NCBI GenBank assembly: GCA_002269645.1
Contig: NIVC01001774.1
Location: 124,001 to 188,000, forward strand
Direction of reading: 5' to 3'
Length of the DNA stretch: 64,000 bases
Source of the DNA: Macrostomum lignano
Taxonomy: Eukaryota
The position numbers and the translations under genes are program-made. Positions within the stretch are counted from its first letter, which is position 1. Each line of letters begins with the position of its first letter. Shown piece after piece: positions 10,047-62,137 of the stretch. Below the pieces are notes generated by a model. That model was not told where the DNA came from. It did not search any database and was given only the letters and a program-made list of their open reading frames with translations.

Positions 10047-10405
10047 ATGCTCAGGAGTCGGCGGAATGAGCAGAATTGCCTTGCCGTCAGCGCTGGGTTG
10101 TGGGACGATGCCGCCCAAGGCATTGTAAAGAACTTTTACAAGTCAAATCTGCCATTAATTGAAAATTGATAAGAGCAGGCATACTGCTATGATTTTACTA
10201 AACTAATTAAAAATTTACGACTAAGTTATAGACTCGCCCATTGTGTTATCTGATTGTCAATTCAACTGTCCCTCGCCACGCGCAATCAATGTACATCATA
10301 CTCTCCGCCCAAGCGACCAATTAGCTCACCCACCCCATCTGTCGTCCAATCAAATCAGATTTAATGGTGAGAAATAATGGCTACTCAAAAGTGTGTTAAA
10401 TTGAC

Positions 10406-11056
10406 TACCCTTAAGTGGGTTCCGGGGCATGTGGGGATCCGAGGAAATGAGCTGGCTGACACCCTTGCAAAAGTTGGTGCCTCCGGCTCCTCTCTCGGCC
10501 CCGAACCTCTTGTCCCGATTCCTGGCTGTGTCATCGACTCGCGCATCAAAGCGTGGATCAGGACTCAGCACCGCTCGACTTGGGCGAACCGCACGAACTG
10601 CAGGCAATCCAGAGGCGCTGTCCCTCAGCCCTCTCACCAGCTCCGGAAGCTCCTCTTGCGCCTCTCGCGCAGAGACATCCGGGCTGCCACCATGACCCTC
10701 TCTGGTCACGGCTGCTTCTCCAGGCACCAGTACTTGCAGGGCAACGCCACCAACGCCACCTGTAGTTTCTGCAACTCAGGTGACAAACCGCTGAGCATTT
10801 CGTCAGCATCTGTCCCGCCTTCACGCGGGCCAGACTCACTTACCTCGGGCCACACACATCTATTACTGAAGCGTGCAAACCCGAAAACTTCAATCAGCTC
10901 ATGCGCTACCTTCGGGCCACCCGCAGGGCTGAACTCTCCTTTCCAGAGAGCACTATAGCTGCTGGCGACACTGGGGGACCTCCCTGGGCGGCGCCAACCC
11001 TCCGTCCATAGCGACGCGTCGGCCGTCGGCCCTCCGGGACGGCGCAGCTAAGTCAA
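10406..11056 (+). mobile_element. 5'-truncated non-LTR retrotransposon (I group, RNase H C-terminus plus C-terminal zinc knuckle)
   Basis: KWVPGHVGIRGNELADTLAK (RNase H end), LSGHG...CSFC..[frameshift]TAEHFVSICP; perfect 13-bp TSD GTGTTAAATTGAC at 10393-10405 and 11057-11069. Confidence 0.9.
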
Positions 11057-11743
11057 GTGTTAAATTGACGGTAAAAATTCTATACAATGCACTTGTATGT
11101 TGCATCGTTGAATAATGGCCAGAACCACTCGTGCGGGCTACCATTGCCTCAGGGAGTCAAGAGCGGTGGTGCGAAAGTTTGTTTTTCATGACTGGACACT
11201 TGGCGGGGGGTTGTCGGAATCACAGACTGTTATATCTACATTCGTTCGAATTGGCACCCTGCTATTTACGATATAAATTATATACAGTACGCACATACTG
11301 TATATAATGAGCATCTGCAGAGTTCATGTTAAATTTACACCCCCATTCAACAATAATAGGCCGGAATCAGTGCACCACCTGAGTGACGGGGTGACCCCCT
11401 AAGGTAGCGTATATATAGACTTATCACATCAAATGAGCCACCAAATCACACGAGCCTTAAAGGAATTGTGCAAATTTTTCTCACTGCACTTTTTGCTGCA
11501 ATCAAATTCATTCTGTCAATATTGCGTCATAATTTACCCCTGTAATAAACCCCAAAACCACGTGAGTCTGATCGCTATAAAGAATTCTAATTTATTAGCT
11601 AGAACTGTTGCGTAATCGATTTGACTTTTAATTGTTCAACTGTACAGTTGGTGCCTTATTTAGTGACGCACAATGCTCAGCGGCTATAAAACTCTGGCAG
11701 AGCAGATCGACGCACGGTCTATGCTTTCTCGATCGTCCCAGCT

Positions 11744-14700
11744 ATGCAGAGATCCACAGTCAGGCATCAGCAGAGCCTGCCACTCAGCCAGCCCTCCAAT
11801 GCTAACAGAGGTTTTGTTCTGCGGCAACAAACCTCGCTGCAGACTGCAGCTGCTGATGGTGCACCTTCGGGGCAGCAATTTGTGCAGATTGTGCAAAATT
11901 CCACAGGTGGACAGCGGCAGCCGCCTCAGGTGGTGTATCTGAGACCAGTGAGCTCTTCGAGTGCCGCACCGCCGGGCTCTGGCGCTGCGCTTCGGATGTT
12001 GGTAAGAAAGCGATGGGAATTAACAGGTGGGATTCCGCTCCACGGGCCGCCCCGAATCGGTTAAATAGCTATTCCTCATCAGAGAGTTAATGCCAAGGAC
12101 AACTTAAGTAGATATATATGTTACTTAAGTAGTCCTTGGTTAATGCTCCGGTAATACTACTCACTCTACTGAAATTTTAGCCATCGTCTTCAGTAGTACC
12201 TAATGGAGCTTTTGTTGCCAGAAGTTCGATGCGCACCCAGCAACAGCTGCAACCACGGCAGCAACTGCATCCACCGCAGCAACTGCATCCACTACAGCAA
12301 CTGCAACCACCGCAGCAACTGCAACCACCGCAGCAACTGCAACCACCACAGCAACTGCAACCACCGCAGCAACTGCATCCACCGCAGCAACTGCAACCAC
12401 CGCAGCAACTGCAACCACCCCAACAGCCACGTCAGCAGCAGCTACAGAGTTTGGCACAGTTTGTCACTATCTCTGAACCGGTGAGATAACGTTGATCTCG
12501 TGATAATTTTACCAATTAGCTACCTGTAGAATTGAGAACATCTGCCACTCAACTACCTGTAGAATTCAGACCATCTACCAATTAGCTACCTGTGGAATTG
12601 AGAACATCTACCAATCGGCTACCTGTAGAATTGAGAACAGCTACCAATCAGCTACCTGTAGAATCGAGAACAGCTACCACTCAGCTACCTGTAGAATTGA
12701 GAACAGCTACCACTCAGCTACCTGTAGAATTGAGAACATCTACCAATCAGCTACCTGTAGAATTGAGAACAGCTACCAATCAGCTACCTGTAGAATTGAG
12801 AACAGCTACCAATCAGCTACCTGTAGAATTGAGAACAACTACCACTCAGCTACCTGTAGAATTGAGAACAGCTACCACTCAGCTACCTGTAGAATTGAGA
12901 ACATCTACCAATCAGCTACCTGTAGAATTGAGAACAGCTACCAATCAGCTACCTGTAGAATTGAGAACAGCTACCAATCAGCTACCTGTAGAATCGAGAA
13001 CAGCTACCACTCAGCTACCTGTAGAATTCAGACCATCTACCAATCAGCTACCTGTAGAATTGAGAACAGCTACCAATCAGCTACCTGTAGAATCGAGAAC
13101 AGCTACCACTCAGCTACCTGTAGAATTCAGACCATCTACCAATCAGCTACCTGTGGAATTGAGAACATCTACCAATCGGCTACCTGTAGAATTGAGAACA
13201 GCTACCAATCAGCTACCTGTAGAATCGAGAACAGCTACCACTCAGCTACCTGTAGAATTCAGACCATCTACCAATCAGCTACCTGTAGAATTGAGAACAG
13301 CTACCAATCAGCTACCTGTAGAATTGAGAACAACTACCACTCAGCTACCTGTAGAATCGAGAACAGCTACCACTCAGCTACCTGTAGAATTCAGACCATC
13401 TACCAATCAGCTACCTGTAGAATTGAGAACAGCTACCAATCAGCTACCTGTAGAATTGAGAACAACTACCACTCAGCTACCTGTAGAATTGAGAACAGCT
13501 ACCACTCAGCTACCTGTAGAATTGAGAACATCTACCAATCAGCTACCTGTAGAATTGAGAACAGCTACCAATCAGCTACCTGTAGAATTGAGAACAGCTA
13601 CCAATCAGCTACCTGTAGAATTGAGAACAGCTACCAATCAGCTACCTGTAGAATCGAGAACAGCTACCACTCAGCTACCTGTAGAATTCAGACCATCTAC
13701 CAATCGGCTACCTGTAGAATTGAGAACAGCTACCACTCAGCTACCTGTAGAATTCAGAACAGCTACCAATCAGCTACCTGTAGAATCGAGAACAGCTACC
13801 ACTCAGCTACCTGTAGAATTCAGACCATCTACCAATCGGCTACCTGTAGAATTGAGAACAGCTACCACTCAGCTACCTGTAGAACTGAGAACAGCTACCA
13901 ATCGGCTACCTGTAGAACTGAGAACAGCTACCACTCAGCTACCTGTAGAATTGAGAACAGCTACCACTCAGCTACCTGTAGAAGGGCAAATAATACTAAA
14001 AAGGAGTCTACAATCGCAGGAGCCTCCACCGCCGTACTGCTTGGTGGACAGTCATCAAAGCTTCGTGCAGCAGATGCAGTTGCTCAGCCTACCGTCCCAG
14101 CCTCCGCCCTACACCGCTGTCGCTTCATCGGCAGTCCCTGCGAGTTCGCAGACTCCAAGATTTGTTTCGTACGCCCCATCCGGAGCATTCGTTCCAGCCT
14201 CGTCGGTGGCAACAGCCGTCCAGCCTCAGGCAAGGAGGGTCGCCTTGGCCCGCTGCGGCACTGCCACCAACACTGCCGGTGTCTGGCAGAGTGGGGTACA
14301 TGTTTTTCCTGCTCTTCTTTCGCTTAAGCTTTAACTGAATTCGTTGGTTTGCTCTGTTCCGCCTCTACACTCTACGCTACTCTGATGAAGTTCTCAGCTT
14401 TTTAATCGAATCTACACTCTTGCCTTCTACTCTCCACTCTACTCCTGTCTTCTACTCTCCACTCTACTCTTGTCTTTTACTCTCCACCCTACTCCTGTCT
14501 TCTACTCTCCCCCCTACTCCTGTCTTCTACTCTCCACTCTACTCCTGTCTTCTACTCTCCAACCTACTCCTGTCTTCTACTCTCCCCCCTACTCCTGTCT
14601 TCTACTCTCCACTCTACTCCTGTCTTCTACTCTCCAACCTACTCCTGTCTTCTACTCTCCCCCCTACTCCTGTCTTCTACTCTCCACTCTACTCCTGTCT

Positions 14701-17510
14701 TCTACTCTCCAACCTACTCCTGTCTTCTACTCTCCCCCCTACTCCTGTCTTCTACTCTCCACTCTACTCCTGTCTTCTACTCTCCACTCTACTCCTGTCT
14801 TCTACTCTCCAACCTACTCCTGTCTTCTACTCTCCACTCTACTCCTGTCTTCTACTCTCCACTCTACTCTTGTCTTCTACTCTCCAACCTACTCCTGTCT
14901 TCTACTCTCCACTCTACTCCTGTCTTCTACTCTCCACTCTACTCCTGTCTTCTACTCTCCAACCTACTCCTGTCTTCTACTCTCCACTCTACTCCTGTCT
15001 TCTACTCTCCACCCTACTCTGTCTTTTAATCTCCACTCTAATCTATCTTCTACTCTCTGCTCAACTGCCTTCTACTCCACTCCACTCTACTCTGTCTTCT
15101 ACTCTCCACTCTACTCCTGTCTTCTACTCTCCACCCTACTCCTGTCTTCTACTCTCCAACCTACTCTTGTCTTCTACTCTCCAACCTACTCCTGTCTTCT
15201 ACTCTCCACTCTACTCCTGTCTTCTACTCTCCACCCTACTCCTGTCTTCTACTCTCCAACCTACTCTTGTCTTCTACTCTCCAACCTACTCCTGTCTTCT
15301 ACTCTCCACTCTACTCCTGTCTTCTACTCTCCAACCTACTCTTGTCTTCTACTCTCCAACCTACTCCTGTCTTCTACTCTCCACTCTACTCCTGTCTTCT
15401 ACTCTCCACCCTACTCCAGTCTTCTACTCTCCACCCTACTCTGTCTTCTACTCTCCACCCTACTCTGTCTTCTACTCTCCACCCTACTCCTGTCTTCTAC
15501 TCTCCACCCTACTCCTGTCTTCTACTCTCCACTCTACTCCTGTCTTCTACTCTCCACCCTACTCTTGTCTTCTACTCTCCAACCTACTCTTGTCTTCTAC
15601 TCTACAACCTACTCCTGTCTTCTACTCTCCACTCTACTCCTGTCTTCTACTCTCCAACCTACTCTTGTCTTCTACTCTCCAACCTACTCCTGTCTTCTAC
15701 TCTCCACTCTACTCCTGTCTTCTACTCTCCACCCTACTCCAGTCTTCTACTCTCCACCCTACTCTGTCTTCTACTCTCCACCCTACTCTTGTCTTCTACT
15801 CTCCACCCTACTCCTGTCTTCTACTCTCCACCCTACTCCTGTCTTCTACTCTCCACCCTACTCCTGTCTTCTACTCTCCACTCTACTCCTGTCTTCTACT
15901 CTCCACCCTACTCTGTCTTCTACTCTCCACCCTACTCCTGTCTTCTACTCTCCACTCTACTCCTGTCTTCTACTCTCCACTCTACTCCTGTCTTCTACTC
16001 TCCACCCTACTCCTGTCTTCTACTCTCCACTCTACTCCTGTCTTCTACTCTCCACCCTACTCCTGTCTTCTACTCTCCACCCTACTCCTGTCTTCTACTC
16101 TCCAACCTACTCCTGTCTTCTACTCTCCACTCTACTCCTGTCTTCTACTCTCCACTCTACTCCTGTCTTCTACTCTCCACCCTACTCTGTCTTTTAATCT
16201 CCACTCTAATCTATCTTCTACTCTCTGCTCAACTGCCTTCTACTCCACTCCACTCTACTCTGTCTTCTAATTTTCTCTACTGCCTACTCCATCTTCTACT
16301 CCACTCTACTCTGTCTTCTACTCCACTCTATTGCCTTCTACTCTACACTACTGTCTTCTACTCTCTGCTCAACTGTCTTCTACTCCACTTCACTCTACCT
16401 GTTTTCTAATTTTCTCTACTGTCTACTCCATCTTCTACTCCACTCTAATCTGTATTCTACTCCACTCCACTGTTTTCTACTCTCTGCTCAACTGTCTTCT
16501 ACTCCACTCCACTCTACTCTGTTTTCTACTCTACTCTACTCTGTCTTCTACTTTATATTCTACAGTACCTTGTATTTTATACTATTCTCACCTGTCAACT
16601 CTACACTGTAAGAGCGTACCTTCTGCCATATAAAATTTATAGTTCCTCTGCAGTCATAGCTACGATACAGTCTATTAAGTGCTGTTTTGATACACTATAT
16701 ACTCGTATTTTACGAGCTGCTTTTAAACCAATAGCATCAGTTAAATGTCTGGTCAAAATATTTTTCTACTTTCCAATCATTATTCAAGGCTGCAACCAGT
16801 GTTGCAAAAACCATCACGACTATTGCATCATCGGCTGGTGCTGATGGACACAGCAGCCTTCCAAGGATTGTACTTTTAAAGTCCACTGGTGGTTCAACTT
16901 CTGCGCCTGCGGCGGTTATGGCGGCTCCAACTGGTGTCCGCTCTGCTTGTTTGTCTTCAGCAGCGTCTACTCAGGTTTGTCATTTTTTCTCCGCTCTTTG
17001 ATTGGTTGGCTTCAGGCTGTTAATTAATTAATTAGCTTTTCACCATCATCCGCTCTGTTTTCGCAGCCAATTGCTTCGACTCTAGCCAACAGCAGCAGAA
17101 GCAGTGGTCTTACTGCACAGTCAGACTCTCCTGAGCCGTCTGCACCTCCGCCGCCAGAGAATTTTATCACTTGTTCGGTGCGTCTTGCCCACATTCACCT
17201 CACTTCCCTTCTATCCCTTACCCCTAGGCTGACTGCAGAGCCAACACCCACCCCACTCCCTTTCCGTCCCTTACCCTTAGGCCGACTTCAAGGCCAACAC
17301 CCACCCCACTCTCTTTCGTCCCTTACCCCTAGGCTGACTTCAGAGCCAACATGCACCCCATTCCCCTTCTGTCCCTCACCCCAAAGATAGAGCCACCACG
17401 CACCCCACTCCGCCTCCCGATTCGGTCAGGTTCAGCTCCGGTCAACAGCTTCCTCGGTATGCGTTCCGACTGCTTTTCTGCGAACTGTGACAGTGCAGCA
17501 ACCACCAATA

Positions 17511-17557
<47 letters not shown>

Positions 17558-18041
17558 GCAGTCGCAATTGGAGCAGCCAGAGCAAGATAAGCAAGACCAA
17601 AAGAAGAAAATCAACAAAAAGAAAATAAAACAGCAAAAATCTCTGCCTGAAGACGTCGCTGCCGCCGCCGCTGCCGCCGCCGCTGCCGCCGCCGCTACCA
17701 GCTCTGACGCTGATGAATCAGCGGAGAAGCGTCGCATCACAGCCCAGCTGCTCAAGTGCGACCGCTGCCAAAGCGACTTCAGCTGTCTGCACCCGATTCA
17801 AAAGCCACAGCCGAGACCAAACGCAGACTTGGCAGCCGACGATCGATCGGACGACGGTTTGGCTTCCGAAGACGACGAGGACGAGCTCATGTGCGGGCGC
17901 TGCAGCTCCAGGATCAGCTTATCTAGCAGGCTCGGCTACTGGCAGCGGCACCGGCTGCCGGACACCGTTGCCGCTCTGCGCGACTTGTTCAAAGGCCAGC
18001 TGTCTAGCGGTCGGAGCCGCCAGCCCTTCCAGATGGTCAAG
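11744..18041 (+). CDS. Q/P/S-rich protein with PPxY motifs and a C-terminal C4 zinc finger resembling GATAD2/p66 CR2; exons 11744-12001, 12181-12480, 14020-14229 (or -14295), 16789-16974, 17067-17177, 17430-18041
   Basis: Six open exons linked by phase-0 introns; CDRCQSDFSC...LMCGRC resembles GATAD2 CAQCKTDFTC...IMCENC (recalled) with a long acidic insert; start codon, the exon-3 donor and the 3' end are uncertain. Confidence 0.65.
12238..12440 (+). repeat. Coding 18-bp repeat (CAGCAACTGCAACCACCG, QQLQPP) inside exon 12181-12480
   Basis: In-frame repeat between acceptor TTTTAG|12181 and donor CCG|GTGAG 12481. Confidence 0.8.
12510..13983. repeat. 33-bp minisatellite (CAGCTACCTGTAGAATTGAGAACAGCTACCAAT), about 44 copies
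   Basis: Direct periodicity; open in the frame of the downstream exon. Confidence 0.97.
14400..16560. repeat. 25-bp C/T-rich intronic minisatellite (CTACTCCTGTCTTCTACTCTCCACT), roughly 85 copies, decaying at the 3' end
   Basis: Direct periodicity. Confidence 0.97.
17205..17400. repeat. Approximately 55-bp degenerate tandem repeat (3-4 copies) in intron 17178-17429
   Basis: CCTTACCCCTAGGCTGACT.CAGAGCCAACA recurs. Confidence 0.7.
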
Positions 18042-18055
18042 GTTGGTGCTGTTGC

Positions 18056-18057
<2 letters not shown>

Positions 18058-18101
<44 letters not shown>

Positions 18102-21100
18102 GATGCCAACCACCTAACGTCAATGGCTAGGGGCCTCCTCCCTGGCCCCCCATGGTGGGTGGCCTCTCCACCACTCCCAATAATTCAAGCTTACTCCGGC
18201 TGTTCACAGACCGCCCGAAGGCCACTGTAACACCACGCCCTCCTCCTTCCATCCGTCGCCGGGCAGTCCCAGACATGCTGCATTGTCTCGTCTTCCATGC
18301 CGCAGCAACGGCATAATTGCTTTCGTCCTGGAGCCCTATCCTCTTCCTGTAGGCTGCCAATTCGGTTGAGTGGCCAGTCCGCATTCTTCTGAAGCTCACC
18401 TCCTCCCTCCTGCTGCTGAACCACGGGTCCCTATTCCTACCACACGTGCTCTCGTACACCCTCAACATTCTCTCCTGTCTCCAGCCACTTATCCGCGTAC
18501 CATACCGCCTCGCTCTTTTCGCCACCGTGCTAGCCATCGCTCTAGTGCCATCATGCTTCACCTCTCCTACCGCTTCGCAGCCACCTCGTCCGCCTCCTCA
18601 TTTCCTCTGATTCCGCAGTGACTATAGGGATCTAGAGCAGGATCAACAGCTTCCCCGCCTGGTCCAGCTTGCCGAACTCTTCTCTGATGAGCTTTACCAG
18701 CGGGTTTCTGCCACCTTTGCTGACCATCTGGAGGCCACTCTTGGTATTTGTACATAACACCGCTTTCGTCCAACTATACCGCGTTTCTATCAGCCATCTT
18801 GTCGCTTCCCAAATAGCGTAGAGCTCCGCTTGCGTCGACGATGCGATCCTGCCTCCCGACACTTTCCTAGACGCCAGGGTCCGCTCCAAGTCGCCACTCT
18901 TCGCAACCATTCCGCCACCTTCGGCTCCATAGTCGTTCACTCGACCGTCCGTGAAAATAACGACATTCGCCCCTTCGCTGGCTTCCTTGATGCCAGCGGT
19001 GCCTAGTTTTCTGCAATCCTCTTCCTCGGCCGGCCGGGAGCCTTCCGCTTGGATCGACACACCCTCCACGTTATTCCTGGTCTTTCTTTTACCACGTCCT
19101 CGAACCTTGTTATATCCAGCTGCCACATCTTCATCAACTCCGAAGCCCACCAGTTCCAGCACCGCCTATTCAAGCGGCTACTCCCTCTGTCTTCCGACAA
19201 TCTCCTTCTGATCGAGCCATCTCTACACCTGAGCATTCTATCCAGCTTCTGGACAGCTCTACAGCTCGCCAGCCCACGGAGCTCCATCGGTGCCGCTCTC
19301 TTCCCTGACTCCCTCGATCGGCGTTGTAGCCATCAGACCTCCAATCACTCTCGTAGCTCTTCTCTGGAGCACTTCCAGCTTAGCCCAGCTCTCCTCTCCA
19401 AGCCACGGCATCCAGACAGTCGATCCATACATAATTTTACTCTCAACAATCGCCTCGTGCTTGCTTTGCCAACCCCAGTCGCTGCCCGCCAGCTTCCTGA
19501 GCAGCTAGACGCATCCCTTACAGGCCTAGCAGATCTCTTGCACGTGCTTACCGAAACTCAGCTTACTATCATAGGTAACGCCTAGGAATTTAGGGTTCTT
19601 TTCCCAAATCAGGCTTCCCTCTCAGGCTGATGACCACTTCGCTAGGGATACGCTTTCGCCCGCTAACACTGAACAGAGTCAAAGTGCATTTACTGGGAGC
19701 CACCGGCAACAGCCACCTTTTGCTCCAGTCTTCCACCAGCTCTATCACCTCCTTAATCTTCACCGCAGCTCTTCTGCTATTGTTCTCACACGCCCAAGCC
19801 GCCAGGTCATCTGCGAACCCGCTCACTTCAACACCTTCCATTGCCCCTATCTCCTCCAACAGGTCGTCAATGAAAATCAGGAACAGGACCGGCGACAGCA
19901 CGGAGCCCTGTGGCAGCATTTGCTTCAAACACACAACCGTGCCATCTCTATCCTGATAGCGGACGACCGCTAGCCGGTTTGCCAGCCAATTTCTGATCCA
20001 TTTCACCATTCGTCTTGCTCAATCCTTTCTGTAACGCTTTCTATGGAAGCCCATGCCTTCACACCTTATCGAACGCCCTTTCAAAGTCCACCAGGGTCAG
20101 GACTCCGCCGTCCCCTCTCTGGAGGGCATCTTCCATCGCCTGAGAGAGTCTGAGGAGCTGGTTGATCATCTTCCCACCCGGAATACCGCTTGACTGTCAC
20201 TGAGGCCCTTCCTTTCCAAGTAGAATTGCATTCTGCTCGCCAATATCATTTCCATCCATTTTCCTACGCAGGACGCGAGGCATACCGGTCTATACGACCC
20301 GACCTCTGCTGCATCCTTTCCTGGCTTGAGCAGCGGGATAATGCGCCTTCTCCTCCAGCTTTGTGGGACGACCGCACTGCTATACGACCAGTTAAACAGC
20401 TCGTGGTAGACCTCAATCATACTATCAGGCAGCTCCTTGGGCAGCTTAGGGTGGATCCCTTCAGGGCCAGCTGCTTTGTTGCCGTCCAAATCCTTCATGC
20501 TGAGCTCACTGCTCTCACTCGTGTCTGGTCCCTCCTCGCTCAACATTTGAGACACCTGCCGTTTCGCCCATCTATGGCTTCTGGGGACACGCACGTGGCT
20601 GACCCTCGCGTATTCTCTCGGAAATGCTCCCGCTTTGGCTCCATCCCATCTGTACTCCTTGCCGCCGTGCTCGAGGACCCTGCTCTTTTCATCTCCGATC
20701 TTGCCCTTAATTTGGTTGAGCACTCTCCACATCTTTAACGATGTCGCATTAGCTTCTAGGTGTTGCCGCCATTCCTGTCTCTTCTTCCCGCTGATCATTT
20801 CCTTGGCTTTGCAATCGAGCTCCGTCCAACGTTCGTCGTTCCCTTCCTTCCTCGCCCTGTTTCTTTCTTCAAGCATCAGCTGGACCTCCTCGTCAACCAG
20901 GTTTCTATTCCTGGATACATTTCCTCGCTGCCGCCAGGATGACTTGCCTCGCACCGGCTTCCACGCCTGCAACGCTGCTACAGTTGAATCTGTACTCTCT
21001 GCATCCTTTATCAATTTGTTCTCTGAACGCCTGCCAATCGGCCTTCTTCCAATTCCAGCGGACAATCCGCCTAGCTTTGGTTTCGGAATCTCTACCGCCA

Positions 21101-22131
21101 GCCTGCATCACTATAGGAAGATGGTCAGAGCTCAGCTTCTGGAGGGTGCTCCAGGACCACGACTGCTCCTTAGAGCCGTGACAGAAGGTGACGTCGAGAG
21201 CTGACCGCACTCCTGTGCCCTTTCCCACCCTCGTGGCAAGGCCGTCATTCAGACACACCATGCCTCTGTCGTCCGCCCATTCAACCAGCGTCGACCCCCT
21301 CACCTCCTCGTCTATCATGCCATCCCAGACCTCGTCATACGCATTGAAGTCTCCTCCTACTAACCTTTTCTCCCCTCCAGGCAATGTGTACAGCGCATCT
21401 CTCCAGCTTCCGTCTTCGCCCGGGGCATGTAGCGGTTTAGCACGCTCAGCTTCTCCGCCATCGCTTCAAGCCTCCCTCCAGCACTCTCTTCTGGGACTCT
21501 CAGACTCCTATAGCACAGTCTCTCTCTAATTAAAATGGCCCGGCCTCCGCCTCTCGCCTTCCAGCATCCCCTCCACTCTGCGCCTGCCGCGTCTCAACAG
21601 CGCGTACCCTGGAAAGACGGGGTCCGGGTCCGCAGCCCTCAGCTTCGTTTCCTGTATCAGCGCAATGTCCATCACCTCCTCCTCCAGCAGGTTAGCTAGC
21701 TCGGCTGTTTTAGTGTGCAGGTGGTCGCAGTTTCACTGAAGCACCCTCCAGCTGGGTAGCTTTCCGGCGGCAGTGTCACATTCTATAGCGTTCCCGCCAC
21801 CCCTCTCTCAGCCTCTCTCTTGCTTCCGGCACGATCTGCAAGGTCCGAGACGCATTCCCTGCATTTCCACCCACCGCTAGATCTCCAGCCGTCTAAACGC
21901 TTTCTACTCACTTCCCCAACGCAGCACCAATGCATCCTCTTAGAACACAGCGCGCAGCACGCTCCGACGTTCTTTCTACAGTAACGGAGACATTCCGCAC
22001 AGCGGACCGCTTTATAGTTTGGTAAATTGGCATTATGTCCTCTTTCGTTCGGCAGTTGACTCTGACGAGCTCCCGCCTTAACACAGCACGCCACGTGAAA
22101 GCTTGAGGACTGTGCTGCAATCCTTCCTTTT
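18058..22131 (-). mobile_element. Near full-length I-group/Ingi-like LINE (PHD finger, APE, RT, RNase H, C-terminal knuckle), disrupted by frameshifts and stops
   Basis: PHD-like Cys cluster (21783-22094); APE motifs IQETK, GGDFNA, SSDHLPI; RT motifs SYRPVCLAS, LPQGSVLSP, FADD; RNase H IFTDG, AELYAI, HCGIRGNEEAD; (AAC)n tail at about 18058-18101; 16-bp TSD GTTGGTGCTGTTGCTG at 18042-18057 and 22132-22147; clade assignment tentative. Confidence 0.93.
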
Positions 22132-22381
22132 GTTGGTGCTGTTGCTGGTGTGTGTGTAAATCAGTATCCCTCAGGGTGCCTGTTAAAGAAACTCCTCATG
22201 TAATTTCTGATGGCTCTCTTTCATAGCAAGTGTTTCTCAAATGGTGACCTTTTGAAGGCCGATTTTTCTAAAAAAAATACTTTTTTACAATGTTATGTTT
22301 AAAAAAGCTGCTAGTAGAAATGCGGTTATTTTATTCTCGAATTTTCTATCAATTTAAACAAAACCGTGAACCACCGTCCAG

Positions 22382-22897
22382 GTGTACGACATTGACGAGT
22401 TGACCACCGGCTGTCAGGTGGCGTTCCGCCGCAGCCTCGGCTACTACCATCACGCCATCGTGGCCGACGTTGGCGCCGAGTTCTTCGACTCGATCGAGTA
22501 CGACTTCCAGTTGCGCCGAGGTGGCGGCAGTTCCGGAGACGGCGGCGGCAGGACCTGCGTGCGCCGGCGTAGCCGGGAGTTTAAGCGGGAGCAGCCGAGC
22601 CTCTATAGGGTGGACTACCACAGCCTCGACTGCTATGCGCCGGACATTGTAGTTGACAGGGCCAATAGAAGGCTGAACGAGACACAGTACAGTCTCATTA
22701 GGAGCAACTGCGAGCACCTGGCTGTGTGGGCCAAAACCGGCGCCTGGGAGTCCTATCAGCTGCGCCAGCTCGAGCAGAAGCTGACTAGGAGCGGTGGCGA
22801 GAGTCAGTCCGTTCGGGTGGAACCCATTCTCATCCGGGATCCCGAACAGGAGGAGGCCGGGGAGAGAACCCGCAGCAACCGGCCGCTGCAGGTCTGA
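22382..22897 (+). CDS. Exon encoding an LRAT/HRASLS-type (permuted NlpC/P60) acyltransferase domain
   Basis: YYHHAIV (catalytic His region) and YSLIRSNCEHLAVWAKTG (NCEH motif); starts at acceptor CCAG|22382, phase 0; no internal Met, so an upstream exon is needed. Confidence 0.85.
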   Translation: MYDIDELTTGCQVAFRRSLGYYHHAIVADVGAEFFDSIEYDFQLRRGGGSSGDGGGRTCVRRRSREFKREQPSLYRVDYHSLDCYAPDIVVDRANRRLNETQYSLIRSNCEHLAVWAKTGAWESYQLRQLEQKLTRSGGESQSVRVEPILIRDPEQEEAGERTRSNRPLQV

Positions 22898-23377
22898 GTG
22901 CAGGTACACTTTAAATTGAGTGTCAGTTTAAACTTTATTGCATAATACATATGACAACCTCTATTGGTTGGTCAGTTCCATTAGTGCCCTCCCTCTCTCT
23001 TGTCTCTGATTGGTCAGTTCCATTCATTCTCTCTCTCTCTCTCCCTCTCTCTCCCTCTTAAATGTGCACAATTGCACAGTGTTTTTGGATTTCGCCGTTT
23101 TAAAAAACTGACTACCCATTCTCTTACGGTGTCGTTGGGTCATTATTAAAGAAATTTGATGTTATTTTTTGTAACAAATCCTTTGTGTGCCGTCTGTGCG
23201 AGTACTGCTCAAAATTTGAAGTTCAGTTTTTTGTTTAAAAAATATTTTTATTTGTTTAATAATAAACTGTCTCGTATCATATCGGTGCTTAGAGCTTTCT
23301 GTCTTATACGATAGCAACAATAGCAATACGAAATGAAAAATAGTTCATCTATTTAGGCCTTAATTTTTTCTGCTTGC

Positions 23378-23747
<370 letters not shown>

Positions 23748-42564: not shown

Positions 42565-45500
42565 ATGCTGCTGCGAGTGCTGCCTTCCACGCTTTCCCGC
42601 TGTCTGAGGCCAGTAAGCCGCTCCTACTATGTTGACCAGCTGTCTCTTGGCGAACCGTTTCACCCCGTTCCAAACCGGCATCCTGTAACTATGGAAGCGG
42701 AAAAAGTATTCGAGCAGCACCTGGACTCCAATCAGAAGGTGTTTGTACACGGCGGGGCCGCCACGCCAAATCACCTAATAGATAGCATGGTGCAAGTTGG
42801 ACTGAAGCGCAAGTTAAAAAACATCAGCGTGATGCACATCCACACTGAAGGTCCGGCCGCCTACAATACCGAAGCTTGCCAAGGCGTATTCCGCAGCAAT
42901 TCGCTGTTCACTTCGGCCAATTGCCGGGAAGCTATCGGCGCTGGTCGGGGCGATTTTACGCCGATATTTTTGTCGGAAATTCCGCTACTATTTCGACGGG
43001 GCGCGGTGAAACTTGACCTGGCGCTTATTATGGTGACGCCGCCTGATAGGCATGGATTCTGCAGTCTGGGACCGTCGGTTGATTGTGCCAGGTCCGCCAT
43101 TCAGAATGCCCGGGTTATTGTGGCTCAGGTGAGTCGCTGCCGACTCTGAATTGAGGTTCCCAACTTTTGACTACCGATAATTTGGGAGTTATTGTAAGGA
43201 TCTAATTGCATTGAGGCTGCACAACAACGAAAGCATAGTTTTAATGCTTGCATAGAGATCACAGACATCTTGAAGATTAGAATAGCTAATAAAGTACCCT
43301 TTTTCTATTTCGAGACTTAAAACTCTTTATGGTTTAATTTGTATGCTTGTTTCCTTAATTACTGATTTATTGTTGAGCTTTTTTGTAAGATGAAAAATCC
43401 CAAGTATTTTTTGTGCTGACTGCAGTGTGGTATCCTGCAAATCTTTAAGAATTCAGAGGTCGCCCACTGAACAGTAGCAAGAAAAGAATGTTAAGGAAAT
43501 CTTTTGTGAGGTCCTGGCTCAGCGGTTATTGAGGTCCTGGCTCAGCGGTTATTGAGGTCCTGGCTCAGCGGTTATTGAGGTCCTGGCTCAGCGGTTATTG
43601 AGGTCCTGGCTCAGCGGTTATTGAGGTCCTGGCTCAGCGGTTATTGAGGTCCTGGCTCAGCGGTTATTGAGGTCCTGGCTCAGCGGTTATTGAGGTCCTG
43701 GCTCAGCGGTTATTGAGGTCCTGGCTCAGCGGTTATTGAGGTCCTGGCTCAGCGGTTATTGAGGTCCTGGCTCAGCGGTTATTGAGGTCCTGGCTCAGCG
43801 GTTATTGAGGTCCTGGCTCAGCGGTTATTGAGGTCCTGGCTCAGCGGTTATTGAGGTCCTGGCTCAGCGGTTATTGAGGTCCTGGCTCAGCGGTTATTGA
43901 GGTCCTGGCTCAGCGGTTATTGAGGTCCTGGCTCAGCGGTTATTGAAATCCTGGCTCAGCGGTTATTGAGGTCCTGGCTCAGCGGTTATTGAGGTCCTGG
44001 CTCAGCGGTTATTGAGGTCCTGGCTCAGCGGTTATTGAAATCCTGGCTCAGCGGTTATTGAGCTAAAACCAGTTACAAGGGGTATAAGACTCAGAAACCG
44101 GTACTGGCTGAGTTGGAATCTAAATGTTGACCACCTCTAGAGACTCACAAGACAATTAAGAATAGTTCTTCAAGTTTCCTAGTGAGCTAGCTACCTTGCT
44201 CTAGAGAGGGTACATAAAAATTAGGCATTCCGATTTGAAATCAGGACGGCAAAACGCAGGGCCGCTCGTCTCCTATTGGTTCAACAGTCTGCAGCCAATC
44301 ATATTTCGCGCAGCCTCCATACACTACTCTTGTAGAAAGAATCGATTAAGGAAGCCTGCAAACCCGATTAAACAAAAGGTTGAAAATAAAAAAAAACTAA
44401 TTCGTGACACACGCTTTTATAGAGCCATTTTAAATTTTATTATTTAAACAAATATAAAATAGAACACTGCAAAACTTTGTTGCTTGCATCCCTAAAACAG
44501 TTTTTTAAATGTACTAATAATATGACGAAGCGTTTACTCATTAAATTTAAAGTAATAGTTACTCCGGCCGTTTACCTTAAAACAACAGGTAAATCCAAAC
44601 TTGCCGCGCACCCGCGGCGACTCGGCCATTCACAGCTCGCACATTGACTGCATGGTGCAGATGCAGCAGCCGCTGCACGAGATGCCGCCTAAAAAGATTA
44701 ACCCTCAGGAGCAGCGAATCGGTCAGCTGATTGCTGAGAAACTGGTAGCTGACGGCTCCACCCTGCAGACTGGCATCGGCAGCATACCCGACGCCGTGCT
44801 AGCCTCGCTGAAGGGTCACAAAAACCTCGGCGTTCACACAGAGATGTTCTCCGACGGCGTAGTTGATCTGACAGAATGCGGCGCCGTCACGAATGCTTTG
44901 AAGCGAATAAGACCTGGCAAAATTGTCAGCGGCTTCGTTATTGGCACTAAAAAGGTGTTCGATTTTATTGACGAGAATGCCATGGTGGAGCTGTGCGATA
45001 TTCACTTCGTTAATAAGGTATGCTGCCGTCAAGTGGAATCGGATTGTAAGGGGATATAAATATTGCAACTATAGTTGTAAATAGCTACCTGATAACAGGT
45101 GCGATTTCTGTGAGTTGTAAATCTAATTGTCTGATAGCAGGTGAGATTTATGTGAGTTGTAAATCTAATTGTCTGATAGCAGGTGAGATTTATGTGAATT
45201 GTAAATCTAATTGTCTGATAGCAGGTAAGATTTATGTGAGTTGTAAATCTAATTGTCTGATAACTGGTAAGAATTCTGCATTCTCAATCAACTCGCAGGT
45301 GGCCATCATCAGCCAGAATCCCCGCGTCACCGCCATCAATTCGTGCATCGAGATTGACCTCACCGGCCAGGTAGTCAGCGACTCGATCGGACCCCGCATC
45401 TACTCGGGCGTGGGCGGCCAGATCGACTTCATGCGCGGCGCCGCTTTGTCCAGCGACGGCCTCGGCGTGCCGATCATCGCGCTGCAGTCTTCGACTAAGA

Positions 45501-46123
45501 AGGGCGGCAGCAAGATTGTGCCGTTCATTCGGGAGGGTCAGTGCGGGTCCCTGCTGTCCTCAGATCCTTCAGTGCGGATCCCTGCTGTCCTCAGATCCTT
45601 CAGTGCGAGACCCTGCTGTCCTCAGATCCTTCAGTGCGGGTCCTTGCTGTCCTCAGATCCTTCAGTGCGGGTCATTGCTGTCCTCAGATCCTTCAGTGCG
45701 GGTCCCTGCAGTCCTCAGATCCTTCAGTGCGGGTCCCTGCTGTCCTCAGATCCTTCAGTGCGGGTCCTTGCTGTCCTCAGATCCTTCAGTGCGGGTCATT
45801 GCTGTCCTCAGATCCTTCAGTGCGGGTCCCTGCAGTCCTCAGATCCTTCAGTGCGGGTCCCTGCTGCCATCCAATCCAACACAGAGAAGCCTAACCATCC
45901 GTACTGAACACCATCCTTCCCCTCCATTGCCGCAGGCGCCGGTGTCGTGACAACCCGAGCGCATGTTCACTACGTGGTCACCGAGCACGGCATCGCGCAC
46001 CTGTGGGGCAAGAACCTGCGCCAGCGAGCCCACCACCTCATCAACATTGCCCACCCTGATCATCGCGAGTCGCTGGAGAAGGCCGCCTTCAAGCGCTTGC
46101 GTTGTATGCCATCGGCTGATTAA
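42565..46123 (+). CDS. Acetyl-CoA hydrolase/transferase family protein (4-hydroxybutyrate CoA-transferase / ASCT subfamily IB-like), 472 aa; exons 42565-43128, 44589-45017, 45299-45536, 45936-46123
   Basis: VHGGAATP, PPDRHGFCSLG, LQTGIGSIP, GVHTEMFSDG (catalytic Glu), GVGGQIDF, VVTTRAHVHYVVTEHG; all introns GT-AG with consistent phases 0, 0, 1; Arg/Ser/Leu-rich N-terminus resembling a mitochondrial presequence. Confidence 0.95.
43508..44062. repeat. 23-bp near-perfect minisatellite (GAGGTCCTGGCTCAGCGGTTATT), about 24 copies, in intron 1
   Basis: Direct periodicity. Confidence 0.98.
45085..45268. repeat. 42-bp tandem repeat, about 4 copies, in intron 2
   Basis: ATAGCAGGTGAGATTTATGTGAGTTGTAAATCTAATTGTCTG recurs. 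Confidence 0.92.
45539..45865. repeat. 31-bp minisatellite (CAGTGCGGGTCCCTGCTGTCCTCAGATCCTT), about 10 copies, in intron 3
   Basis: Direct periodicity starting within the splice donor. Confidence 0.96.
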
Positions 46124-50970: not shown

Positions 50971-51005
<35 letters not shown>

Positions 51006-51422
51006 CGCACGTATGCGGGTCGACTGTTGCCATTGACTTTAACTTCATTTTTAAGGTGTTGCTAACTAATTACCTCTCTTTGCCCCCCCCTCCCTTCGCT
51101 AATCGGCAGGTGGAGCAGCTGGTGATGGCCACGGAGGCGGCCAGCATAGAAGAGTTCGAGCGGGCTGCCCAAGTCTGCAGCCAGTCGGAGGAGAAAATCC
51201 TGGTTGTCAGCTACGGCCGACAAGGCCTCGATCAGACCGGTGACGGCCATTTTGCGCCTATCGGCGGCTACCATCCCGAGCGCCGGCTGCTGCTGGTGAT
51301 GGACACGGCCAGGTTCAAGTATCCGGCGCACTGGGTGCCTCTGGAGCGGATGTGGACTGCGCTGCACTACCCGGACCCGGTGAGCGAGTGCTGCTTGCTG
51401 ATTGTCTGTCTGTCTGTCTGCC

Positions 51423-51463
<41 letters not shown>

Positions 51464-51466
51464 GCC

Positions 51467-51531
<65 letters not shown>

Positions 51532-51545
51532 GTCCATCTATCTAC

Positions 51546-51597
<52 letters not shown>

Positions 51598-54438
51598 ATA
51601 TCTATCTATAGAAGCTGGTTCCAGCAGGTAGTTCCTCTGGATAAAAGCGCTTACCGCGCCCATTGGCTTTTCAGCTGCCTAATTGGTTTCCGGTGATCTT
51701 GTGTGCGTGCTTTCAGCTTGATTGGCTGCGGCTATCTCGCTATCTACTTATCTATCTATCTGAGGCAGCGCTGGCTGTACTTATGACTAAGTGACTAGCC
51801 TCTGATGCTTACCTGCAAATCGAGCTCGATAAAGATAGCCGAGAGGTGACGACAATCGCGACGCCTTTGGGTCTCTTCGGCTACAAAAGGCTCGTTCCCG
51901 GGCTGAAATCTGCATCGGCCATTTTCCAGAAAGCCATGGAAACAATCCTACAGGATGTCAGCAACAAGATTGTCTACCAGGATGACGTCCTCCTGGGAGC
52001 TAAATCCAACGCCGAATTAAGGAGCAAAGTGCAGCACGTTCTCCAGACGATGCGAGCTACTGGAATGACAATCAACCTAGAAAAGTCCAATCTGAGCGCA
52101 ACGGAGGTCAGATTCCTCGGTTACAGCATCAGCGCGAGCGGGATCACCCCGGACCCCAATCTGGTCGGAAAAATTCGCTCCGTGAACTCGCCGAAGGACA
52201 GAAAGCAGCTCGAATCGTTTCTAGGACTTTCCAACTTCTTCGGGAGGTTTATTAAGAATTACTCTGACGTCATAGAACCGCTCAATCAACTCCGGGGCCG
52301 AAACGTTGAGTTCGTCTGGGGCCCAACCCAGGAAGCTGCCTTCACGCGAATCAAGGATCTGCTCTGCAGCGAGCCTGTAATCAAGCCGTATGACAAGCAC
52401 AAAGAGACCACGCTCACTACCGATGCTAGCGAGAAAGCCATCGGAGCGATCCTCTCGCAGGGAAACCACCCGATCATGTGATGTACTTCAGCCGGAGACT
52501 GAGCAGTGCAGAAGCACGGTATTCAAACATCGAGAGAGAGGCGCTGGCGATCGTCTGGGCTATGGAGCGTGCGAAACAGTTCCTATTAGGGTCGCGCTTC
52601 ACACTCAGAACGGATCATCGCCCGCTGGAATTCATCTTCGGGTCGAGGCGCCAGTTGCCGAAGGTTGCCAATGCGAGACTTCTCCGATGGGCAATCAAAC
52701 TGATGGCCTTTGACTATGACATCATCTACACTAAAGGCGAATCGATTCCGCAAGTAGATGCACTTTCACGGCTGGATTTCGAAGGTGACAGCAGCAACGA
52801 GCTGACAGAGCGGTCGGAAAGCATCATTCACTGGACTAGGAGGCTGTGATTCCGTGGCAGGAGCTGAAATCAGAGACCCAAAGGGACCGGTTGCTGGTTG
52901 ATATCATGAAACGCGTTGCTATCAACAGATGGTCAAACTGCTCGCCAGCTGAACGACCTTTCAAGGCCATCCGACACGCCCTCACGACCGACGACGGAGT
53001 TCTCTGCTACGGTGATCGCCCAGTCATCCCGGCTGTCCTCCGACAAAGCGTTCTTGGAATCGTGCACGATACGCATCAGGGATCTGGCTCAACGCGCGCT
53101 CGCCTACAGAACTCAGCCTGGTGGCCTGGATATTGCAACGACGTCGAGGCCTACGTTCGAGGTTGCTCGACCTGCTCAAGACTGCGCCCGAGTGGTCTGG
53201 AGAGTATCCACAGGTGGCCCGACGAAGAAAAGCCGTGGCACAGAGTCCAAATGGATCATGCGTGCGTGCCGAGGGTCGGACTCCTGATCATTCTAGTTAA
53301 CGCTATGTCCGGCTGGCCCGAGGCCGTACGAGTGCAAAACAGGGACGCGGCGACAGTCAAGCGGTTGTTGCAGTCGGTCTTTGCTAGGAACGGCGTGCCT
53401 CATGTGCTGGTCAGCGACAACGCCGCCGAGTTCCACGACGCCAATCTGGTCGCCTGGCTGGAATGAATCGGCTGCCGCGCCATCAAGACTCCCCCGCGAC
53501 ACCCTCAATCTAACGGCTTGGCCGAGCGGATGCTCCAGTCTATCAAGAGAGCATCTGCGGCGCCGGACCAGTCCGAAAGCTACGAGTCGTTCCTGTCCAG
53601 GGTACTCCTAAACTACAGGTGTGTGCCGCATGCTGGGCGCCAGCAGAGCCCGTCGACAACTACGCAACCCGATAACCATGCGCACACCAATTGGAGCGAG
53701 CCTGTGGTACACGCCTGGAGATCAGCAGCGTCAGGAGCGAGCTGAGTTCGTCGTGCAGAAAGGGACCAACACTGCCCTAATCGCTCGTCAAGGCGGTCGC
53801 ATCGCCCTGGCGCATGCGGATCAGCTGAGCCGCGTTGTAGAAGACCAGGTCCAGCCAAACCGATTAGGCCAGAGCCTACCTATCGAACTCGGTCAGGACC
53901 CGCTTGGCGAACTCGGTCAGGACCCGCCTGGCGAACTCGGTCAGGACCCGCCTGGCGAACTCGGTCAGGACCCGCCTGGCGAACTCGGTCAGGACCCGCC
54001 TGGCGAACTCTGTCAGGACCCGCCTGGCGAACTCTGTCAGGACCCGCCTGGCGAACTCGGTCAGGACCCGCTCGGCGAGCTCAGTCGGGACCCGTCCACC
54101 GAATCCGAACAAGGCCCAAGTCAAACAGCAGCACGTCGCTACCCAGCTCGGTCAACTCGAGGCGTGCCCCCTATCCGTTTCGAAGGGGGGAGATGAGGCA
54201 GCGCTGGCTGTACTTATGATTAAGTGACTAGCTGATTAACTATTGAAATATTGACTGTACATCCAGTGTACCCACCACCCCGGCTTCGTGCCCCGTGCGC
54301 CCCGCCACCCCAATGCGTATATTATATATTGAGCATCGTTTGTGTTAGCATCGTTTATGATATATCGAAACTGAGACATCGTTTATTTTACCAAATAATC
54401 GTGCTACTCAGTTGAACTCTTAGTTAAACGGCGCGACA

Positions 54439-62006: not shown

Positions 62007-62137
62007 TACTATTCCGTCTAATAGCGACTTACATGTTTTTGTTGCCAATTAGAAATGGCCGAGTGAATCCTAAGGTTGCGCCCAAGCATGCCCCACATGA
62101 TAAGTCTAAGCCTATTGTTTCACAAAATTTTCAGGCA

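Follow-up and report, generated by a model that had tools for sequence, protein, structure and literature searches.

The locus in the analysed window, a 64,000-nt stretch of Macrostomum lignano contig NIVC01001774.1, is probably an uncharacterised member of a lineage-expanded family in which a zinc module and a linker stand before an LRAT domain, with its two conserved parts rejoined by cis-splicing from 18041 to 22382. The initial annotation had put this join forward as a candidate novel architecture, a GATAD2-like zinc finger spliced onto an LRAT/NlpC-P60 catalytic domain. Comparison with relatives bears out the join itself. The claim of novelty does not hold, as the same arrangement recurs among the annotated M. 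lignano paralogs, in three groups or more, and in several metagenomic eukaryotic sequences; because these paralogs and relatives carry the zinc module and the LRAT domain contiguously, the 'fusion' is the normal architecture of the family and not a new one. In window coordinates, the features of the locus are:

11744-11746, plus strand: start ATG
11744-12001, plus strand: putative exon 1, Q-rich, with ATG start, open frame and donor TTG/gtaaga (canonical GT)
12181-12480, plus strand: putative exon 2, (QQLQPP)n repeat, phase 0/0
12510-13983, plus strand: 33-nt minisatellite, 44.7 copies, 0 indels
13972-14295, plus strand: putative exon 3, two PPxY motifs, acceptor CAG/CTA at 13971/13972
14023-14037 and 14101-14112, plus strand: PPxY motifs of putative exon 3
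16789-16974, plus strand: putative exon 4, Ser/Ala/Thr-rich
17067-17177, plus strand: putative exon 5
17430-18041, plus strand: exon 6, with polyQ, basic stretch, polyA, zinc module and linker
17757-17768, 17787-17795 and 17892-17903, plus strand: zinc-module motifs CDRC, LHP and CGRC of exon 6
17952-18041, plus strand: conserved linker of exon 6, RLPDTVAALRDLFKGQLSSGRSRQPFQMVK
18042-22381, plus strand: intron 6, 4340 nt, GT...AG, phase 0
18058-22131, minus strand: degenerate non-LTR retrotransposon (LINE), antisense to the gene (PF14529, PF00078)
18058-18102: (AAC)n tail of the LINE
22382-22897, plus strand: exon 7, LRAT / NlpC-P60 domain (Pfam LRAT), 45-aa polar tail and stop
22448-22453, 22496-22498 and 22709-22711, plus strand: predicted catalytic residues, namely HH, Glu of SIEY and Cys of NCEH

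Both sides of the join read as first described. Exon 6 ends in phase 0 with ...CAG ATG GTC AAG/GTTGGT at 18041, and exon 7 starts in phase 0 with ccgtccag/GTG TAC GAC at 22382 and continues to the TGA at 22895-22897, with an in-frame TGA 15 nt upstream (22367-22369) and no Met in 171 codons; the LRAT frame thus opens just 15 nt before the exon, without a Met, and needs an upstream exon. In the paralogs P0003, P0004 and P0015 (Mlig027228, Mlig032654/009919 and Mlig018064), both halves are matched in single stretches (e.g. query 18-259), and zinc module, linker and LRAT domain are uninterrupted in Mlig027228, Mlig032654 and Mlig018064 as well as in the metagenome relatives. Alignments A1 and A2 are gap-free at the join (…QPFQMVK/VYDIDEL against …RPYACVKVSDIDEL), with R106, L114, R115, S123 and P130 conserved before it and L142, R152, H158 and H159 after it. 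Exon 6 corresponds by homology to the last of the paralogs' zinc modules plus the linker (P0003 residues 281-353 match it by tblastn at E 7e-4), and it retains intact zinc ligands and linker invariants. With the window left out of its construction, a family HMM recognizes exon 6 alone at 30.6 bits and the spliced product as one domain at 178.2 bits (HMM positions 3-216), while the LRAT exon alone reaches 132.3 bits on the family HMM. Moreover, the AlphaFold2 model of A2 (pLDDT 82.3, pTM 0.81) predicts with confidence a β-strand (residues 103-106) that crosses the join at residues 105/106. The gap-free colinearity with contiguous relatives and the single HMM domain strongly support exons 6 and 7 as parts of a single coding unit, with the join at 18041^22382, from which we infer the splicing itself.

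The module boundary lies within one exon in five relatives (paralog loci L001-L003, and P0064 and P0036, which are single ORFs), and none of the five has an intron at the position of the join, which makes the interruption lineage-specific. Most of intron 6 is the LINE, whose broken minus-strand ORFs match an endonuclease (PF14529, E 9e-13) and a reverse transcriptase (PF00078, E 9e-16), and which is bounded at 18042-18057 and 22132-22147 by a perfect 16-nt target-site duplication, GTTGGTGCTGTTGCTG. Once the LINE and one of the two copies are taken out, what remains is exactly the 250 nt that had been given for the intron without the element. Within the window, the intron 6 sequence matches only itself, and so gives no sign of a repeated element. 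These observations fit a history in which the family plan, a Cys/His zinc-binding module and conserved linker directly before a PLAAT-like NlpC/P60 thiol-acyltransferase/phospholipase domain, would have been split precisely after the Lys codon and before the Val codon of ...VK/V.DIDEL... by a GT-AG intron in phase 0; this intron would first have been 250 nt long and later have taken in the 4.1-kb antisense LINE, and cis-splicing would restore the contiguous zinc module–linker–LRAT unit. The donor, GTTGG at 18042, departs from GT[GA]AG, which 65% of cis donors in M. lignano carry (PMC8629364), and now lies 4.3 kb from its acceptor; this off-motif, distant donor and the lack of the intron in all five relatives are points against the cis-join.

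The same intron lends itself to another reading, which we regard as unlikely, namely that the 35-nt M. lignano spliced leader (SL; CGGTCTCTTACTGCGAAGACTCAATTTATTGCATG) is trans-spliced at 22381/22382 to yield a stand-alone 172-aa LRAT enzyme. The SL ends in ATG (PMC8629364) and, because the acceptor is in phase 0, these last three bases would provide an in-frame start (AUG/GUG UAC...). The upstream zinc-finger protein would then end by read-through at a stop that is now at 18228-18230 and was at 22201-22203 before the LINE arrived, or alternatively through the 22175 acceptor as …MVK-GAC-stop; the acceptor dinucleotide in question (22173-22174), raised in the initial annotation, is present in the sequence. 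In M. lignano, trans-splicing affects approximately 30% of genes and, with repeats removed, operon spacers measure ~100 nt (PMC8629364), which favours gene fission, as do the repeat-adjusted distance of ~180 nt between the pre-LINE stop and the acceptor, the weak, non-consensus and distant cis donor, and the existence of LRAT-only relatives with short leaders in Branchiostoma and others. However, zinc module, linker and LRAT are contiguous both ancestrally and across the family, the conserved exon 6 linker is understandable only as attached to LRAT, with the predicted β-strand crossing the join, and the interruption ends exactly at GT...AG in phase 0. Furthermore, the acceptor, GTCCAG, is only a partial fit to [T/C]TNCAG, the motif of trans-acceptors (PMC8629364), and neither AATAAA nor ATTAAA occurs between 22203 and 22381. 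There is a small chance that the locus represents domain fission in progress, a single transcription unit giving rise both to an LRAT enzyme on its own and to a distinct PPxY/zinc-finger protein. An ancestral single-exon zinc-module–LRAT gene would in that case have gained an intron precisely where the two domains meet, the phase 0 of all exons and the AUG-ending SL would allow the acceptor to be trans-spliced, and the LINE insertion would weaken the cis donor and tip the balance; cis- and trans-splicing might also operate side by side, the trans-spliced form being an alternative isoform. We also considered ATG/GTGACC at 22241-22243, listed earlier as a possible start of a separate LRAT gene. 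It is present, and as a stand-alone mini-exon start it is possible by sequence, with the GT as its sole support; the conserved Lys and the linker would be lost, and this candidate was rejected.

In the cis-spliced product, which we prefer, exon 7 supplies an LRAT domain with the His and NCEH motifs intact, as originally described (YYHHAIV at 22442-22462, NCEH at 22706-22717). It matches Pfam PF04970 (LRAT) at 37.5 bits, above the curated cut-off of 24.3 bits (E 3.3e-9, profile positions 8-118 of 120), and both the Cys of SNCEHLA and the His of YYHHAIV are invariant in 11 family members. The column immediately preceding the conserved Y/F is more variable, with H in seven members, E in three and N in one, the window having E (SIEY). 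As a single sequence, the LRAT exon found no match among PDB sequences by phmmer, indicating that the domain is divergent; the family profile matches the PLAAT3/HRASLS2 structures (4dot/4dpz) at E 1e-9. The best Foldseek match is PLAAT4 (7zot_A; E 5.4e-4, probability 1.0, TM 0.60 target-normalised), with 2lkt, 4q95, and NlpC/P60 and CHAP enzymes next. As modelled, the exon 7 domain has the papain-like α+β fold of PLAAT N-terminal domains.

The window product thus shares the LRAT/NlpC-P60 papain-like fold with LRAT and the PLAAT/HRASLS proteins (among them PLAAT3, the group XVI phospholipase A2, and PLAAT4/TIG3), and, like the vertebrate PLAAT/LRAT proteins, it has a nucleophilic Cys within NCEH and a His within a β-strand motif. 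At what may be the third polar position, it has Glu in place of the PLAAT His, in a loop where the alignment to PLAAT3 (His35) is inexact. Whereas vertebrate PLAAT1-5 and LRAT have a C-terminal membrane anchor, no such hydrophobic anchor is found in the window product, whose 45-aa tail after the LRAT domain is polar and charged; conversely, the extra N-terminal zinc module and long low-complexity region distinguish it from PLAAT/HRASLS. By analogy, it would act as these enzymes do, with the NCEH Cys as the nucleophile that accepts the acyl group, the HHAIV His as the base and, by prediction, the Glu of SIEY at the third polar position; the zinc module is likewise predicted to pack against the catalytic domain.

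The M. lignano paralogs, PAA49922.1 (Mlig027228, 620 aa), PAA87291.1 and PAA91352.1 (Mlig032654/Mlig009919) and PAA83958.1 (Mlig018064, 668 aa), are annotated solely as hypothetical or 'LRAT domain-containing protein'. Like the window gene, they have a terminal zinc module (C..C/LHP ... acidic loop ... CxxC), a linker (R-x-P-x-T-V-x-x-L-R ... G-x-P) and an LRAT domain with HH and NCEH, and the window shows 27-37% identity to them over the module, gap-free at its splice join. They differ from it in having the module in one exon, which intron 6 splits in the window, in carrying several more Cys-pair zinc ribbons N-terminally, where the window has a Q/P-rich region, and in a ~130-aa C-terminal extension, in place of which the window gene stops 45 aa past the domain. 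Consistently, tblastn of the paralogs against the window gave matches in exons 6 and 7 only, the upstream exons being Q/P/S-rich, and no similarity to the C-terminal extension was found downstream of the window stop. That the window copy lacks this extension and the multiple N-terminal zinc ribbons is a further observation that counts against the cis-joined model.

The proposed likeness to GATAD2 fails. The CDRC-x41-CGRC pattern can be read on the sequence as reported, and this C4-type pattern beside a Q-rich region is all that speaks for a new kind of fusion, between an LRAT enzyme and a chromatin protein of GATAD2/p66 type. The initial annotation had itself made the label depend on a GATAD2 profile match, and none was found: the window product gave no GATA (PF00320) or P66_CC match at E <= 1, the paralogs gave none either, and hmmscan of the 593-aa N-terminal part detected no P66_CC coiled coil (CR1, which binds MBD2/3). 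The spacing, C-x2-C-x41-C-x2-C, differs from the x17-18 of the GATA type, the Foldseek matches include no GATA finger, and in the paralogs the first Cys of the zinc module is replaced, the His of LHP being conserved instead. GATAD2A/B, p66 subunits of NuRD, have a GATA-type finger (CR2) and a P66_CC coiled coil, whereas the window has neither and no fold match, sharing with them only a four-Cys pattern and glutamine-rich low complexity. Given also that many database proteins have the same architecture, such a fusion is highly improbable.

Upstream of exon 6, the exon-3 start implied by the initial model, 13984, has no AG directly before it. The in-phase acceptor is the CAG/CTA site at 13971/13972, or an equivalent site in any upstream in-frame unit of the 33-nt minisatellite, and with this correction the predicted product is at least 768 aa long instead of ~730. 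Read in the exon 3 frame, the minisatellite stays open, as LPVELRTATNQ units, and may be either an intronic or a coding repeat; its codon positions have no synonymous bias, and unit-to-unit variation is mostly non-synonymous, which gives no sign of constraint. Both PPxY motifs are present as had been stated. These Q/P-rich PPxY exons may belong to the zinc module–LRAT transcript, and, if putative exons 1-5 are real, they would place WW-domain docking sites where the paralogs have their multi-zinc-ribbon N-terminus.

The sole public model of the locus is A0A1I8JNV2 (UniProt/UniRef; P0001), an ab-initio model from M. lignano recovered by exhaustive HMMER search at 98% identity, and the locus accordingly already bears the UniProt name 'LRAT domain-containing protein'. 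This model falls onto the window in pieces, mostly 100% identical, and is faulty, its path including spurious LINE-antisense exons. Exact look-up of nine candidate products in the protein collection found none of them (LRAT-only versions with V, M or GTG start, plus the A/E allele; exons 6 and 7 joined, with and without the SL Met; and the full-length fusion with either of two exon-3 starts). A word-index protein search with the zinc module and LRAT gave no matches, and with profile A2 it returned LRAT proteins of other taxa only and none from M. lignano, whose set the index apparently lacks, so that a missing match there carries little weight. A literature search for zinc-ribbon plus LRAT architectures, or for Macrostomum and LRAT, found nothing relevant.

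The absence of a transcript-based protein for the locus from these protein searches and exact look-ups would also be expected of a decaying, non-functional paralog, a duplicate no longer correctly expressed. This view, which we consider very unlikely, draws further on the LINE in a critical intron, the non-consensus donor and the loss of paralog features at both ends, where the C-terminal extension is gone and the N-terminus replaced. PMC10468722 describes M. lignano as a recent polyploid with many redundant copies, which points the same way. Nevertheless, all seven putative exon frames are open, the 171-codon LRAT exon keeps its high family HMM score together with the Cys, the His and the invariant positions, and the zinc ligands and linker invariants survive in exon 6. 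An antisense LINE inside an intron is usually tolerated, which likewise counts against decay.

The value of these findings lies mainly in annotation, and current understanding is not overturned: the public annotation A0A1I8JNV2 is wrong in its LINE-antisense exons, and the family comparison supplies the correct 3′ structure. The combination of a lineage-specific intron at a domain boundary with an SL that donates an AUG offers a small, testable case of how trans-splicing might permit gene fission. Macrostomum has an expanded zinc-module–LRAT family, which also occurs in other aquatic eukaryotes and, being without a described function, is a reasonable target for studies of non-vertebrate PLAAT-like enzymes.

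When the region 11500-23200 was read and the proposed exons were translated, a putative seven-exon gene was obtained on the + strand (11744-22897), with a zinc module and linker in exon 6 (17430-18041) and an LRAT domain in exon 7 (22382-22897). Its main landmarks, taken from the sequence read and translation, are as follows.

11744, + strand: start codon ATG
18041, + strand: end of the zinc-finger exon, ...ATG GTC AAG^GTTGGT
22382, + strand: start of the LRAT exon, ccgtccag^GTG TAC GAC; stop TGA at 22895-22897
23145-23150: ATTAAA, candidate poly(A) signal

The LRAT exon is closed upstream in its frame by TGA at 22367-22369 (15 nt 5′), and its 171 codons include no methionine. The initial annotation had described donor, acceptor, upstream TGA and the methionine-less exon accurately, and the motifs it listed (CDRC-x41-CGRC, two PPxY and NCEH) are all found in the translated exons, as is the His motif YYHHAIV. 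The LRAT domain is confirmed by Pfam PF04970, which scores 37.5 bits (cut-off 24.3), and no membrane anchor was found in the gene product. Both ends of all seven proposed exons are in phase 0, and of the six proposed donors two match GT[GA]AG and four do not. The implied start of exon 3 at 13984 could not be upheld, as no AG lies directly 5′ of it; the phase is kept instead by the acceptor CAG^CTA at 13971^13972 or by its counterpart in any of the 33-nt repeat units farther upstream. Repeats and neighbouring coding features are listed below.

12510-13983: 33-nt minisatellite, 44.7 copies, 91% matches, no indels, open in the exon 3 frame
14416-16323: 25-nt minisatellite, about 77 copies, in putative intron 3
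17196-17382: 53-nt repeat, 3.5 copies, in putative intron 5
23378-23745: (TAGA)n microsatellite, about 92 copies, about 500 nt 3′ of the LRAT stop
10377-10958, + strand: RNase H fragment (another retroelement)
42565-45907, + strand: acetyl-CoA hydrolase/transferase N- and C-terminal domains
50975-51631, + strand: phytochelatin synthase exon
62033-62842, + strand: RRM protein

Read in the exon 3 frame, the 33-nt minisatellite would encode LPVELRTATNQ-type units; the differences among its units are mostly non-synonymous, and the first stop-free acceptor within it (12585^12586) would lengthen the protein to about 1230 aa. One gene holds several large tandem arrays.

With the zinc-finger and LRAT peptide as query, HMMER was run exhaustively against 1.84 billion representatives and returned 872 matches. 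The top one, P0001 (UniRef A0A1I8JNV2, 'LRAT domain-containing protein', Macrostomum lignano), is 98% identical, and tblastn places it on the window mostly as 100%-identical pieces, several of them on the antisense strand within a LINE. It is composed (16884-22888) of out-of-frame exon 4/5 pieces, part of exon 6, four to five LINE-antisense pseudo-exons and the LRAT exon. Because of these near-identical pieces, several of them antisense in the LINE, P0001 is an ab-initio mis-model of this same locus and is evidence for no splice. Exact look-ups of nine candidate products gave no match, and a word-index protein search returned no M. lignano proteins.

Three more M. lignano proteins, the paralogs P0003 (PAA49922.1, Mlig027228), P0004 (Mlig032654/009919) and P0015 (PAA83958.1, Mlig018064), span both query halves in one stretch, as where query 18-259 aligns with P0004 221-468. 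The window's ...RLPDTVAALRDLFKGQLSSGRSRQPFQMVK^VYDIDELTTGCQVAFRRSLGYYHHAIV aligns with ...RIPQTVSALRRAVKGRFSRGKMGRPYACVKVSDIDELKPADQLDFRRSLYSHHAIV of P0003, the join being gap-free and having invariant residues on either side. Against an HMM of ten relatives, the window left out, the spliced product forms one domain of 178.2 bits (HMM positions 3-216); scored separately, exon 6 reaches 30.6 bits and the LRAT exon 132.3 bits. The 18041^22382 splice that the initial annotation had proposed is, by this homology, well supported. AlphaFold2, run with an alignment of the window module and its relatives, gives the 252-residue module a mean pLDDT of 82.3 and a pTM of 0.81, which suggests a zinc module packed confidently against the LRAT domain, and predicts a β-strand (103-106) straddling the join at 105|106.

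About 30% of M. lignano genes are trans-spliced to a 35-nt leader ending in ATG, and the species has operons with short spacers (PMC8629364). Since acceptor 22382 is in phase 0, the leader AUG would be in frame there and would yield a free 172-aa LRAT protein, and the cis donor, GTTGG, departs from the consensus and is now separated from the acceptor by 4.3 kb. As the source of the main product, such trans-splicing is nevertheless unlikely, given that zinc module-LRAT contiguity is family-wide, that exon 6 holds a conserved linker and the predicted β-strand crosses the join, and that no poly(A) signal lies between the pre-LINE stop (22201-03) and 22382; it may occur alongside cis-splicing. Because every exon is in phase 0 at both ends, the leader's terminal ATG would be in frame at every proposed acceptor, including 17430 and 22382.

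Cis-splicing would remove intron 6 (18042-22381), whose insert is a degenerate minus-strand LINE with endonuclease (PF14529) and reverse transcriptase (PF00078) matches on broken ORFs, an (AAC)n tail and a perfect 16-nt target-site duplication, GTTGGTGCTGTTGCTG, on both sides (18042-18057 and 22132-22147). Taking out the LINE and one duplication copy leaves exactly 250 nt, as initially calculated. The zinc-module/LRAT boundary lies within a single exon in the P0003, P0015 and P0153 loci (residues 93-620, 165-668 and 267-450, respectively), and the relatives P0064 and P0036, from metagenome contigs, are each one uninterrupted ORF; compared with these five relatives, intron 6 is apparently restricted to the window copy. 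Because the relatives are uninterrupted there, the 250-nt interruption can be placed precisely at a codon boundary within a conserved segment, with GT...AG ends and in phase 0. Such an arrangement, not expected from random disruption, is consistent with a spliceosomal intron, either acquired in this lineage or lost from every other one. An imperfect 8-nt direct repeat flanks the intron (exon 6 end GTCAAG^GT, 18035-18043; intron end GTCCAG^GT, 22375-22383) and would suit a candidate footprint of intron gain by insertion or duplication.

The label 'GATAD2-like' is refuted by the criterion that the initial annotation itself set: GATA (PF00320), P66_CC and the other Pfam zinc-finger families have no match in the window protein or in its paralogs, LRAT being their sole consistent Pfam match, and no GATA finger is among the fold-search matches. 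The Cys spacing is 41 in the window gene and variable among paralogs. As P0003 and P0015 have the first Cys substituted and retain the His of the conserved LHP motif, the zinc ligand set may be C/C-H-C-C. For the catalytic half, the fold search found PLAAT4, TIG3, an HRASLS3/LRAT chimera and NlpC/P60 and CHAP enzymes, and the family profile matches PLAAT3 and HRASLS2 structures (E 1e-9) in the LRAT part only. The PDB chain that Foldseek ranked first for the predicted module (17724-18041 plus 22382-22819), above PLAAT4, was E7 in the respiratory supercomplex of Euglena gracilis (8iuf), with E 6.5e-5, 213 columns and an rmsd of 16 Å.

By homology to PLAAT/LRAT enzymes, catalysis would proceed through a thioester acyl-enzyme intermediate on the NCEH Cys, with the HHAIV His as base and the SIEY Glu at the third polar position, where the family has H, E or N. 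With every frame and catalytic residue intact, the locus is very improbable as a decaying paralog. Should putative exons 1-5 belong to the gene, their two PPxY motifs might be docking sites for WW-domain proteins.

The claim of a novel architecture is unsupported, as Cys-pair modules followed by LRAT already occur in other database proteins, often with a glycine-rich hydrophobic C-terminus (e.g. P0097, P0032, P0013, P0011 and P0064); Mytilus and Branchiostoma have LRAT proteins that belong to the same subfamily and carry no zinc module. The window gene carries one zinc module, preceded by a Q/P/S-rich region, whereas its paralogs have several zinc ribbons, and it lacks their C-terminal extension of ~130 aa. 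A literature search found no paper describing the zinc-module and LRAT family. The family is thus databased but uncharacterised, the window gene is one more, mis-annotated member of it, and the public protein model A0A1I8JNV2 needs correction.
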